NCBI GenBank assembly: GCA_950097015.1
Contig: CATNEN010000008.1
Location: forward strand, 2,604,001 to 2,668,000
Origin: Macrostomum hystrix
Lineage: Eukaryota; Animalia; Platyhelminthes
Reading direction: 5' to 3'
DNA: 64,000 nt
Part shown: one piece after another, positions 18,201 through 23,710 of the stretch
Numbering within the stretch: the stretch's first letter is position 1
Layout: every line of letters begins with the position of its first letter
The notes under the pieces: model-generated
Database searches by the model: none
The model's input: the letters and a program-made list of their open reading frames with translations, nothing else
Told to the model about the DNA's origin: nothing
Made by a program: the position numbers and the translations under genes

Positions 18201-18553
18201 ATCATGAGAGAACCTCATGAGAGAATCATGAGAGAACCTCATGAGAGAATCATGAGAGAACCTCATGAGAGAATCATGAGAGAACCTCATGAGAGAATCA
18301 TGAGAGAACCTCATGAGAGAATCATGAGAGAACCTCATGAGAGAATCATGAGAGAACCTCATGAGAGAATCATGAGAGAACCTCATGAGAGAATCATGAG
18401 AGAACCTCATGAGAGAATCATGAGAGAACCTCATGAGAGAATCATGAGAGAACCTCATGAGAGAATCATGAGAGAACCTCATGAGAGAATCATGAGAGAA
18501 CCTCATGAGAGAATCATGAGAGAACCTCATGAGAGAATCATGAGAGAACCTCA
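18201..18553. repeat. 24-bp minisatellite (~14.5 near-perfect copies)
   Basis: Unit atcatgagagaacctcatgagaga. Confidence 0.95.
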
Positions 18554-19006
18554 CAGACCAAGGGAAGAAGTAATATATGTACCTTCGAATCGGTGTCGTG
18601 ATTCTGATCATTATAGATTTTGACATTTGACTTTGACATTCGATTCTCGGCTCTTCCTTTTGTTTTCTAACAAAACACTATCCATCTTTCCTTTTTTGCT
18701 GACTTTTCAGGTGAAATATTTTTAGAAGTATATATACGCTAATATACGAGTAATTAAATTAAAAGCCTTTAGACGAAATGTTTAGCTTGAGATACAAACA
18801 TAAAGATCAGCTTGATGTCCATCAAGCAGCTGGTGCACCGTTCTCTTTATTAAAATTGGTTTAACCAGCAAAATGCTGCCAGGTCTGCATCTGAATAAAG
18901 CAACAGGCATGAAACATTTTTTAAATTAAATAGAACAGACAACAGAAAACCATTCGAAGTTTCTAATATTCAATCTGGACCGAACTTGAAGGTTCGCGCT
19001 TGTTTG

Positions 19007-21799
19007 TCACAATGGTTCGTTTATGAGCAGCTCGTTGTTGTCCTTCGAAATCTTCTTGATATTAATGATGTCGGGCATCAGCCCTGGCTGGCAGTATTGA
19101 ATGAGGTCCTCGAGGTCCATAGTGCTATCTGAGCCGGCGCTCGACAATGATTCAATGTCCAGTTTGCTGGCTCCACCATGCTCTTTGGCTAGCCAGTCGC
19201 TCTGATTCATAGCGCCCCCGAAGCTGCTCAAGTGCGAGCCGTAGCAGTGGCTATCGCGAGTACCAACAAGAATGTCGTCCTGGCTGCCAGTTCCTTTACT
19301 GTAGACTAAATGGTAGCTAGTTCTGGCGCCCCAAGAGTTGGCGTGATTCTGGGACTGAGATCGAATTTTGTTGCCAAATGATTGATTTCTCTGCTCATTT
19401 GGTCTCTTGTTGCAGCATCTGCAGCTATTCTTCTTCACCTTCCCAGAACGAAAAGGTGACTGGTTATAATTTTGAGGTGTAATTCTGGATTCCTCTGACG
19501 TGTTTGATGTGTTCCTCTTCTTGGCACCTTTCTTTCCCTTTTCTTTTGATTCTTTTTTAGGCGATTTGCCATCTGATTTTTTTTCTTTTTTAGGCGATTT
19601 ACCATCTGATTTTTTTTCTTTTTTAGGCGATTTGCCATCTGATTTTTGTTCATTTTTTGGCGATTTAGAACACATTTTCTTGGATTCTCCTGATTCCTGT
19701 GATGCGTTCCTCTTCTTGGCATCTTTTTTCGCGTTTGATTTTGGTGTTATATTCGGTGATTCGCCATTTGATTTTGGTGATTTGCCATCTGATTTTGGTG
19801 TTATGTTTGGTGATTCGCCATTTGATTTTGGTGATTTGCCATCTGATTTTGATGATTTCTTTGGCGATTTGTCAGCACACTTGCTCTGAGTGAGACATGG
19901 TTTCTTTTTCGGTTTCGATGGGTCGCTGGCGCATTTACTTTTTGATTGGTCGGCGCCTTTATTTTTCGATTGGTCGGTGGCGCCTTTTTTTTTCGATGTC
20001 TTGTGCCCTGTGGATTGGTCGGTCGGTGGATGCAGATTGGCGTAGGTGTCAGCCAGTTCATCCAGATAGTCGCATGCCTCCTTCATTAATTCGGTAGAGC
20101 CGTCGGCATTCTGATTATCATTCAAGTGCAGAGCTTTAAAGGTATTATTTTTTTCAATAGTGTAGTTGTGCAAGAAGAGGTTAACAGCCAGTAGCTTCCT
20201 CATAGCTTCCGATTGGCTGCGAAAAAGCGTCGACGTCACTGTGCTGTTGCTAACCAGTGTCACAGAGAGCGGCGTCTCGGCTATGCCGCTGTTCGGCGGA
20301 GCCAAAGGCGGCAAATTGATGAGGCCGGCCTTGAAGTTCGCTGGCGCCCATTCCGCGAATTCTATTCGGCCACGTTCTCGTACTGAGTTCAGCGCCTGGT
20401 CAACGTCGACCGGCTTTGCAGCGCCACGGAAGATCAACACGCCAGCCATCTGCTTACCCTGGCGCAGGTCAAGGTCGACCAGCTGATTATCTGGCTCCAA
20501 CACGGCGGCTGAGATACCAGAGGCGCTAAGGCGCTCTTTGCCTACATTGGAGGTTGATACGAAAGGCGCACAGGCCAGGACGGTGTGCTTCAGTTGCCTG
20601 CGGAAGTTTTAATGGAGCGTTGTTGTTAAAACATTGCGCCAACTGCTGATTATAGCTCGTAAAATCATAAACAAAAAAGAAATTCATCTTAAAATCTTAT
20701 CAAAGATCTATAGCAACTTTTTAAATCTTAAAAAATACTTTAGGAGATATATGAGTGTTGCAAAAACTTTTTCTGTATAAATAAAATCTTAGAAGCTTAG
20801 AAAAGCGGTTCATTCTAAGCCGTAATGCAAGTCTACGTTCACAAACCTAAACGGCAGCATATTGGTGCAAAGCGAGGCAATGTTGCACGCTAAAGTTCCA
20901 TGAAATCGATCCATTGCTGTGAGGTTGCTGAAGCACATGGCCAGCATGCGGTTGATGTGCGCGAAGGTGGCAGTTCCGTTCATGCTTAGACCAGATCGGC
21001 ACACGCGGAACATGGCCGAGTTACTGGCCCAGAAAGACAGAAAGGTGTGGTCTTTAGACTCGTAGGTGTATAGCGCGGAGTTAATGAGTTCGCTGCTGCT
21101 CTGCAAGCTTGAGTTGCCGGCGATAACGCTGAAGTCGAGCACCTTAATGCGCGTGTCGAGTTCTTCCTTCAGGGCATTCAAGAACGACACGGCCAAGCCG
21201 CTGCCAGTGCCGCCGCTGATGCTGTGAGTGAGAATCGTCGTCGGAGTGAAGTCAGACTTTTCGGCCAGCCAGCGAAATCGTTCGACAGCCTCCGGCACGA
21301 GCTTTTTATTGAAGTACTTAAGACCGACCATGTAATTCATCTGGGCGTCCATGACGTCACTAAGGAGCTGCTGTTTGTTAAACAGATCGCGGTATGGGCC
21401 AGATCGAATTTCGTCTGCAAAACAGGTAGCAAGGATAGATTTGTCTCTTTAAGCACGTCAAATCGCCAAAATTTTCGGGGCTTTAAAGCAGAAAAGAATA
21501 TCCATTGCGCTCGAATCTAGCTTTTGATTGGTATCACAAAATCTGGAATGCTCACCTATGCAGGTCGGATCGGTGTCTAGAAAAATTGCTCTGGGCATGA
21601 AATGGCCACTCTGACTACGCAGGAACATTGCGTCATAGAAGCCATTGCCGGGACACTCTGTTTTGGCCGCGCCGCTCTTTTCGATGTTGTGCTCCAAGCA
21701 GAGCAGCTCCCATATGGCGTTGCCAATCTGAACCCCAGCCTGACCCAAGTGGAGGGTCAGAAACGGCCGGGCCTGTTTGGTGGATGCGCAATGACACAT
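19007..21799 (-). CDS. Highly divergent alpha-tubulin-like protein (~800 aa) with long basic C-terminal extension
   Basis: Exons 21799-21556, 21414-20847, 20597-19007 total 2403 nt, frame-consistent GT-AG. Motifs HLGQAGVQIGNAIWELLCLEH, PRAIFLDTDPT, HSISGGTGSG, LEPDNQLV..GKQMA..FRG, IEFAEWAP.NFKAG. The start could lie further upstream in the same frame (ATG near 21937). Confidence 0.85.
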
Positions 21800-22849
21800 T
21801 ATGTTTGGTGACACTAGACCCGCAGCCAGCGAGAGGCAATTCTGCCCATTCCACAGTCTCCTGAGCACAAATGCACACAGATACTGTAAGCAGGCATACG
21901 CACACACAGGTGTGTACATCTGCCCTGACTTTCTCATCGTCAGGCAGTGCACACTCTCACTGTGCCTTGGAGGTTGGCCCTCAATTGTGTTCACAAGCCT
22001 TCTCTCCGCGGCTGCGCCTCAAATAATTCGAGCTTAGGGGCCTTAGTGCCAGAGAGCAAATGCGTAAAACCAGTCTGCTACTAAGACCCTAATTGCAGGA
22101 TAGTTTAAAGCCATCATTTCAAAAGCTATTGTTTATACTCCCGATTAGAAGTTAACGCAGTGACTTACAGAATCCACGAAGGTCATAATGTGTAGCTCTT
22201 TATTTGAGTTTAGCTATGTTAGCTCTTCGCTCCTCTGTGACTGACTGATGGATAAGAAAGTAAGTTCCTGTTGCCACCACTATTCACGTGTGCGTTTCTT
22301 TGGCCATAGAAAACTTTGAAGTTTTCTATTTTTAGCGCTTGATAAAAAATCAACACTTTCTGCACTTTTCTTGAATTAGAAACGTTTAGTTTATCTCACA
22401 GATACTATAATAGCCACACAAAGCACACAAGCCACCCCACTGCCTTTCTTTCGTATAATATAGCTTCTGGATTCTTTACTTGCTACTGAGCTGAAAGTAG
22501 AAAAACGAAAAAGCAAGGACATTTGCGGAAGTGACCTATCTAGTTACATAGTATCTGTGGTTTATCTTCAATGTATAATAGAATATGACTGGCATGCCGA
22601 TAATGATTGACAGGTAGATAATAATTGACGTGTAGATAATGATTGACGGGTAGATAATGATTGACGGGTCGATATTGGCTAAAAAGTATTAATTTTAATT
22701 TCTGACATGTGAAAAACGACTGAACATTTAAATAATGACAAGTGGATAATAACCGACAAGTAGATTAGGATTGACATAAATAATTGTTGAAATTTAAATG
22801 GGACTTTTAGGTAGTTAGTGACTGATAGGTCAAGTTAACTGATCGAAGG

Positions 22850-23710
22850 ATATTGACAAGTAGATAATGACAAGTAGATAATGACAAGTAGATAATGACA
22901 AGTAGATAATGACAAGTAGATAATGACAAGTAGATAATGACAAGTAGATAATGACAAGTAGATAATGACAAGTAGATAACAACAAGTAGATAACAACAGG
23001 TATATAATGACAAGTAGATAATTACAAGTAGATAGGGAAAAGTAGATAATGACAAGTAGATAACAAAAGGTATATAATGAAAAGTAGATATTTACAAGTA
23101 CATAAAGGCAGGTAGATATTTAGAAGTAGATAATGACAAGTTTGATAACAACAAGTCGATAACAACAAGTAGATAACAACAGGTATATAATGACAAGTAG
23201 ATAATTACCAGTAGATAATGACAAGTAGATAATTACCAGTAGATAATTACCAGTAGATAATTACCAGTAGATAATTACCAGTAGATAATTACCAGTAGAT
23301 AATGACAAGTAGATAATTACCAGTAGATAATTACCAGTAGATTATGACAAGTAGAAATGACAAGTAGAAATTACAAGTAGATAATGACAAGTAGATAATT
23401 ACCAGTAGATAATTACCAGTAGATTATGACAAGTAGAAATGACAAGTAGAAATTACAAGTAGATAATGACAAGTAGATAATGACAAGTAGATAATGACAA
23501 GTAGATAATGACAAGTAGATAATGACAAGTAGATAATGACAAGTAGATAATGACAAGTAGATAATGACAAGTAGATAATGACAAGTAGATAATGACAAGG
23601 AGATAATGACAAGTAGATAATGACAAGTAGATAATGACAAGTAGATAATGACAAGTAGATAATGACAAGTAGATAATGACAAGTAGATAATGACAAGTAG
23701 ATAATGACTA
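22850..23710. repeat. 14-bp minisatellite
   Basis: Unit gacaagtagataat, with ccagtagataatta variants; degenerate copies from ~22600. Confidence 0.95.

Follow-up and report, generated by a model that had tools for sequence, protein, structure and literature searches.

A divergent tubulin gene lies on the minus strand of a 64,000-nucleotide (nt) stretch of the genome of the flatworm Macrostomum hystrix (assembly GCA_950097015.1, contig CATNEN010000008.1, positions 2,604,001 to 2,668,000; hereafter the window). Its four coding exons, separated by three introns and comprising 2394 coding bases, specify a 797-residue product made up of a 456-residue core derived from alpha-tubulin and a 341-residue tail. 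This is a genuine, expressed gene that evolves under purifying selection, and the tail belongs to the protein. Comparison with Macrostomum lignano places the conserved element of the tail in its C-terminal ~135 residues rather than in the SPKK-bearing region, and, as judged from the same alignment, the linker before this element is free to change in sequence, length and charge between the two species. On balance, we favor the view that the protein is a lineage-restricted, divergent alpha-tubulin paralogue with an FtsZ-like layout, in which a core is followed by a variable linker and a conserved docking end.

Gene structure, tubulin core and relatives

The gene model draws on RNA evidence in the form of Logan contigs of four runs, mapped on positions 18900-21900 of the window. 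Spliced forms, whose joints omit 21415-21555 and 20598-20846, are present in three of the four runs (X2, X5 and X9), each from a different study, and because these joints have GT..AG borders on the minus strand, the three runs contain RNA. At the 5' end, RNA contigs diverge from the window at 21772, right after a cag acceptor, and their onward letters match 22169-22198 exactly, at a GTAAGT donor. We therefore take the ATG at 22186 as the true start; an in-frame stop lies nine codons 5' of it, and the N-terminus in the spliced contigs reads MTFVDS in exon 1, followed by ARPFLTLHLGQAG... (MTFVDSARPF). The initial annotation had bounded the feature at 21799, but the ATG at that position sits within intron 1. 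The features of the gene are as follows.

22169..22186, minus strand: exon 1, coding part (MTFVDS); RNA contig ends match 22169-22198, with donor GTAAGT; 5' untranslated region (UTR) upstream to ~22240
21773..22168, minus strand: intron 1, 396 nt, GT..AG; the ATG at 21799 falls in it, as does a dispersed repeat with high expression (~21804-21900)
21556..21772, minus strand: exon 2, tubulin N-terminus with T1 loop GQAGVQIGN, alpha-tubulin residues 2-75 (spliced contigs; PDB phmmer E 1.5e-16; Pfam Tubulin 48.4 bits)
21415..21555, minus strand: intron 2, 141 nt, GT..AG; joint 21414/21556 in X2, X5 and X9
20847..21414, minus strand: exon 3, GTPase domain, alpha residues 76-263, with T4 SGGTGSG and T7/H8 carrying N249A, D251N and E254S (PDB phmmer E 1.6e-28; residue mapping)
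20598..20846, minus strand: intron 3, 249 nt, GT..AG; joint in X2, X5 and X9, boundaries from the sequence
20033..20597, minus strand: start of exon 4, the tubulin C-terminal domain (alpha residues 264 to ~436), with the S9-S10 insertion and the H12 equivalent (Pfam Tubulin_C 64.8 bits; PDB phmmer E 7e-20; loop alignment)
19418..20032, minus strand: middle of exon 4, the variable linker (tail residues 1-205), basic and rich in Lys, Ser and Pro, in which four SPKK lie; largely made of tandem repeats (19913-19997, 19736-19869 and 19550-19666), with a 24-nt in-frame indel allele at 19944
19010..19417, minus strand: end of exon 4, the conserved C-terminal region (tail residues 206-341; E 8e-28 and 40% identity over 148 columns in BLASTP against the M. 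lignano tail)
19007..19009, minus strand: stop codon TGA; 3' UTR to at least ~18785, with X2 and X5 contigs over 18900-19579 running more than 100 nt past 18900

Within intron 1, the summed depth of RNA contigs over 21804-21900 is 10-50 times higher, with many contigs diverging off both sides, and this segment looks like a dispersed, widely transcribed repeat.

Searches were run exon by exon, with the M. lignano protein as a stand-in for the full-length core; the joined 797-residue model served solely, within local scripts, to derive coordinates, composition, alignment and the tree. Of the three open stretches, two match Pfam Tubulin (48.4 and 40.6 bits; cut-off 33) and the third matches Tubulin_C (64.8 bits; cut-off 26.6), which places both domains of the tubulin superfamily (PF00091 and PF03953) above their curated cut-offs. 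The best 60 PDB matches of each exon are all alpha-tubulin and are colinear with residues 2-75, 76-263 and 264-411. The complete tubulin fold recognized in the initial annotation is thus of the alpha-tubulin type. In comparison with the tubulins of the same genome, the core scores 216 bits against alpha and 149 bits against beta, and it is 31.7% identical to the canonical alpha-tubulin and 26.7% to the beta-tubulin, which are themselves 41% identical. The alpha-specific 8-residue insertion in the S9-S10 loop is present (LAPPNSGIAE aligned to VVPGGDLAKV) and is absent in the genome's own beta-tubulin. From the PDB matches, the bit scores and this insertion, the core reads as alpha-derived, yet it has diverged further from alpha-tubulin than beta-tubulin has.

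Like canonical alpha-tubulins (such as TUBA1B and the M. hystrix genes L003-L010), the protein has both domains, colinearity over residues 2-411, the T1 loop GQAGVQIGN, a GGTGSG-type T4 loop (SGGTGSG for canonical GGGTGSG) and the S9-S10 insertion; E183, N206 and N228 are also kept. Unlike them, it lacks the MREC start, its shortened K40 loop carries no Lys where K40 would be, and the substitutions N101M, Y224F, N249A, D251N and E254S have accumulated in a core of only 32% identity. The T5 and M loops are rewritten, a small insertion precedes H12, and the acidic tail with terminal EEY, whose absence had been pointed out in the initial annotation, is replaced by 341 residues with an isoelectric point (pI) of 9.8. 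In the catalytic T7/H8 region, D251 and E254, the activators of beta-tubulin GTP hydrolysis, are both replaced, and the M. lignano orthologue has N at both positions. Hydrolysis of GTP on the neighboring beta subunit is triggered by alpha-tubulin E254, and mutation of this residue yields hyperstable lattices (PMC7018511, PMC8764682).

When a complex between the M. lignano core and beta-tubulin of M. hystrix was predicted, the score was 0.50 versus 0.00 for the best of three controls, a difference that may reflect the model's memory of solved tubulin dimers. The predicted local distance difference test (pLDDT) score was at least 77 for the partner and 77-78 for the core, and the runs shared at least 71% of contacts.

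The extent of these changes bears on an alternative reading, in which the product is a non-polymerising tubulin-fold protein, a soluble scaffold or regulator that might, for instance, sequester beta-tubulin or a tubulin cofactor and would use its tail for localisation. Divergence of the core from canonical alpha-tubulin beyond that of beta from alpha, the loss of N101, Y224, D251 and E254 together with changes in the K40 loop, M-loop and T5 loop, and the weak outcome of the beta-tubulin complex test would all fit such a protein. Nevertheless, the T1, T4 and T6 nucleotide-binding motifs and the colinear fold have been retained through a long divergence, and the predicted core, with its pLDDT of 77-78, was placed on beta-tubulin well above the controls. 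We regard a non-polymerising role as possible, although doubtful.

In an exhaustive HMMER search with the last exon, the close relatives recovered were two M. lignano proteins, Mlig018576, with 56% identity across the tubulin part, and Mlig033756, with 42%; all other matches were ordinary tubulins at ~30%. Word-based protein searches with the last exon (whole, 1-190 and 395-529) were blank, which is not evidence of absence given the low-complexity words, the ~30% identity and a cluster representative without the conserved end. The core of the orthologue, Mlig018576 (PAA78082.1; UniRef A0A1I8HZ98; named 'hypothetical protein' or 'Tubulin domain-containing protein'), is 64.5% identical. The M. 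hystrix genome, whose Machtx_v2 assembly comprises 42 contigs and 220,453,370 bases (Wiberg et al. 2023, PMC10468722), contains one closer paralogue (L002, contig 1; 42% identical over exon 3) and ~20 canonical alpha-tubulin genes. In a maximum-likelihood tubulin tree, the gene groups with Mlig018576 (95/96) and L002 with Mlig033756 (100/100), and the two pairs together make up a single long-branched clade (100/100), which the tree alone leaves unplaced relative to beta-tubulin. Since two orthologue pairs fall within one clade, the duplication is older than the split of M. hystrix from M. lignano. The gene is a member of a Macrostomum-restricted family of very divergent alpha-tubulin paralogues.

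The sister family (L002/L022; contig 1, 19,828,000-19,836,500) has a core 44% identical to that of this gene, and derived core substitutions are common to both. The sister paralogue comprises N-terminal exons, a core exon with an insertion of ~100 residues before H12, and a further exon (L022:4011-4478, minus strand) that starts Lys-rich and ends in HPAIVEAARIL, an end motif common to the M. lignano C-terminus. In this family, part of the M. hystrix tail is rich in Lys, the M. lignano tail is acidic and rich in Gln, and the conserved end is HPAIxEAxxIL. The same layout of core, variable linker and conserved end thus recurs with a different end motif, and no significant similarity was found between the sister-family tail and the tail of this gene.

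The tail and its conserved end

From the tubulin C-terminal domain (...DELADTYANL, ending at 20033), the frame remains open through 341 further codons to the TGA at 19009-19007, in agreement with the ~340 residues initially described. Lys makes up 18% and Ser 17% of the tail, whose net charge is +34 overall and +42 over its first 240 residues. Its description as Lys/Ser-rich and basic holds for the tail overall but not for the last ~100 residues, which are acidic, hydrophobic and non-repetitive. The four SPKK motifs and internal repeats recorded in the initial annotation are present, along with seven SPK and 13 S/T-P sites. Composition-preserving shuffles gave a mean of 0.12 SPKK, and four were reached in none of 20,000. 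However, three of the four SPKK lie within a single 33-bp x3.5 tandem array and are therefore not independent. The coding minisatellites of the tail (54 bp x2.5, 33 bp x3.5 and 24/27 bp x3) all have units that are multiples of three, and in the two SPK-bearing arrays the DNA repeat units match at 91-94%. Such near-identity between tandem units points to a recent, lineage-specific expansion of the linker repeats. Elsewhere at the locus, a perfect 24-bp x14.7 tandem array (100% matches) occupies 18201-18553, ~450 nt 3' of the stop codon, and on the upstream side of the gene, 22849-23500 consists of a 14-bp x46.8 minisatellite; a minisatellite-rich locus fits a repeat-built linker.

The M. lignano gene provides the comparison that separates the conserved from the variable part. 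At the M. lignano locus (L015; NIVC01000708.1, gene Mlig018576g4), the frame is open from 7638 (QLKHP, the start of the last exon) to 9383, and the end of the core and a 381-residue tail share one open frame, as in M. hystrix. BLASTP of the two tails (E 8e-28, 40% identity over 148 columns) is confined to M. hystrix tail residues 206-339, and residues 1-205, which carry the SPKK motifs, have no BLASTP counterpart in the M. lignano tail. The conserved end starts with a di-Cys in a basic context (CCNKRP in M. hystrix, CCRKRN in M. lignano), followed by NHANSWGA and SQDDxLVGTRD, a variable stretch, and a terminal block, DSxxDLxxxIxxCxPGxMP...K...NE. The two proteins also resemble each other in the losses of D251 and E254 and in encoding core and tail in a single exon. 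They differ in the linker, which in M. lignano is acidic or neutral, unrelated in sequence and free of SPKK, giving the tail a net charge of -7 to -17. What is conserved between the two species is the last ~135 residues, a non-basic region that the initial annotation had not set apart, and not the SPKK linker.

For the M. lignano orthologue, the UniRef model (P0153, 790 residues) likewise closes with the conserved blocks. In the NCBI models PAA78082.1 and PAA47215.1 (P0001 and P0151), the ends are read in a shifted frame, so that ~250 residues including the conserved end are missed; the public M. lignano gene model is hereby corrected.

The initial annotation had attributed to the tail a DNA-binding or phospho-switchable function. 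Under this interpretation, the SPKK repeats form a functional module, either a histone H1-like minor-groove binder or a cross-linker resembling a microtubule-associated protein (MAP), switched by cyclin-dependent kinase, that tethers microtubules to chromatin or bundles them in sperm. The SPKK and S/T-P content, the net charge of +42, the SPKK count far above the compositional expectation, and differences within the repeats that are mostly synonymous are all consistent with such a module, and repeated SPKK in a Lys/Ser-rich disordered stretch is a likeness to the arms of histone H1 and sea-urchin sperm histones. Several observations argue against it: (i) The segment is not conserved, the M. 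lignano linker being acidic, without SPKK and without detectable similarity. (ii) Three of the four motifs derive from one recent tandem duplication array. (iii) Pfam matched only Tubulin_C on the last exon, with no linker-histone or MAP domain, and there is no globular H1 domain as in the histones. (iv) The sister tubulin is also Lys-rich in M. hystrix where its M. lignano counterpart is acidic and Gln-rich, which suggests a species-wide compositional trend. A histone-like DNA-binding role is not supported, and we consider the SPKK module unlikely as a whole. More generally, deriving function from SPKK-type low-complexity repeats calls for caution and needs comparison with an orthologue.

Transcripts and selection

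Whether core and tail share one messenger RNA (mRNA) is answered by the spliced contigs. In X5, a single 1602-nt contig runs from exon 2 through exon 4 into the tail, of which it covers the first 210 nt; in X2, a contig spans 19822-20599. The remaining tail is tiled by RNA contigs that break only at repeat k-mers, and no splice joint occurs within the tail. As contigs join core to tail and the tail has no joint, transcripts neither splice nor stop right after the core. In X5 and X9, the depth over the 3' part of the tail (18900-19579) is similar to that over the core. Thus, the proposal of a tail on the same mRNA as the core, in an expressed gene, is confirmed by spliced contigs from three studies, and the tail is also open elsewhere, both in M. 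lignano, where it shares an exon with the core, and among M. hystrix samples, where the sole indel (24 nt, at 19944) is in frame.

Differences between the window and RNA contigs of other samples are predominantly silent. Among 13 coding differences, 11 are synonymous and two non-synonymous. The tail contributes eight of the former and both of the latter, set against 210 synonymous and 813 non-synonymous sites, and the core three synonymous and none non-synonymous. The binomial P, in a model that leaves mutation bias out, comes to 1e-4 for the tail, or 0.005-0.02 when restricted to sites in securely anchored contigs, and to 3e-6 for the gene as a whole. The other two coding-strand frames of the tail region contain 9 and 18 stops. 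A decaying or neutral locus, that is, a tubulin pseudogene or read-through into repetitive 3' sequence with a tail open by accident, might be suspected from the extreme divergence, the low-complexity repeat-built tail and the blank word-based protein searches, but it is very improbable and largely refuted by spliced and abundant transcripts in three studies, the excess of synonymous differences, the 341-381 codons open in two species with a conserved end 40% identical, and the stops that fill the other frames.

Proposed architecture and known systems

The FtsZ-like layout in the favored reading rests on the analogy with a known arrangement. In bacterial FtsZ, a folded core is followed by a disordered linker and a conserved C-terminal peptide that docks membrane anchors. 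The Macrostomum protein shares with it a tubulin-fold core, a linker variable in length and sequence, and a conserved end, and this pattern of core, free spacer and conserved end suggests a flexible tether with a docking end. It differs in being eukaryotic and alpha-tubulin-derived, and its multi-block end of ~135 residues has no sequence relation to FtsZ; the comparison is therefore one of analogy and not of membership. In the mechanism that we propose, the core would pair with beta-tubulin in the alpha position and, without E254, could make or cap hydrolysis-poor, stable microtubules, with the tail projecting from the lattice and its conserved end docking a partner or membrane. The basic linker of M. 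hystrix may contribute a non-specific electrostatic attraction to acidic surfaces (tubulin tails or lipids, for example), rather than being the conserved functional element. A sperm role is plausible for a fast-evolving Macrostomum gene, as a candidate only.

Several findings weigh against this architecture or limit it. At the level of the core, the interface loops T5, T7/H8 and M-loop are strongly diverged, and the predicted complex lends weak support to pairing with beta-tubulin. At the level of the tail, the conserved end has no Pfam match and no usable ESM Atlas match, and AlphaFold2 (AF2) with a two-sequence alignment gave it a pLDDT of 35 and no fold. No copies of the tail were found elsewhere in the M. 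hystrix genome, so that nothing points to gene fusion or to a mobile element. With no Pfam match, no Atlas neighbor, no other genomic copy and no confident fold, the conserved end looks like a set of short linear motifs. At the level of the transcript, the X2 contig over 18900-19579 has a depth of 90 versus ~600 in the core (~15%), and one X2 contig ends at 19739 in 19 non-templated A, resembling a poly(A) tail. Some X2 transcripts may thus end inside the linker; the 19739 end may represent internal polyadenylation in the coding linker, giving a non-stop mRNA, or an assembly artefact. Finally, eight of the ten tail differences lie within or close to repeats, and the small number of non-synonymous changes in the Lys-rich part suggests that linker drift within M. 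hystrix is not fully free.

A more specific version of the FtsZ-like layout can be envisaged, in which this design was re-invented: a hydrolysis-dead alpha-like subunit in or capping stable microtubules (e.g., cortical or sperm) would be tail-anchored to a membrane or partner through the di-Cys/polybasic element, a candidate palmitoylation or lipid site, together with the terminal docking blocks, and the linker charge would have flipped from acidic (as in M. lignano) to strongly basic (as in M. hystrix) during rapid reproductive evolution. In its entirety we consider this version quite improbable, and we offer it as speculation.

The protein is of interest as a tubulin derivative that has lost a hydrolysis-driving residue and has kept, across two Macrostomum species, a 340-380-residue tail that possesses a conserved end of its own. 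If it does enter microtubules, it would amount to a natural 'E254 mutant' with a built-in adaptor, and a natural experiment on lattice stability and on the limits of re-purposing tubulin tails. M. lignano is amenable to RNA interference and transgenesis, which makes the question directly testable.

Tubulin tails are normally short and acidic and carry the 'tubulin code'. Cell-type-specific isotypes outside the glutamylation/tyrosination code include C. elegans TBA-6 and the alpha-like and beta-like tubulins of Tetrahymena. These resemble the present protein in having non-acidic or unusual tails, but their tails are short and their cores near canonical, in contrast to the ~340-residue tail and extremely diverged core described here.

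Other alpha-tubulins encountered in the searches also vary at their C-termini. Two sequences, P0009 (Logan SRR33002330, L014) and P0027 (UniParc UPI0005FF00AD), form a separate alpha-like group 49% identical to canonical alpha-tubulin, with an altered T7/H8 region and very acidic, Asn/Glu-rich tails of 250-500 residues that end in SLMEELIRITAEI. A C-terminal motif shared with the present protein was suspected and is unsupported; the two sequences group separately in the tree. Long-tailed alpha-like tubulins may have arisen more than once. The M. hystrix genome itself is unusually diverse in its alpha-tubulin tails. On contig 5 (L012; 128,816-132,376), an alpha-tubulin 64% identical to the canonical form keeps E254, has a large insertion in the H1-S2 loop and carries a Lys/Gln-rich tail (...KKDNKQKLLQKKKPQKQQQQQRQ), and three alpha genes (L019-L021) lack a terminal Tyr, the end of their products reading EEEIEE..KD... 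Among the ~20 intronless alpha-tubulin frames, which include L003-L010, most start at RECIS with no genomic ATG before it, which fits an initiator AUG supplied by a spliced leader or a tiny upstream exon.

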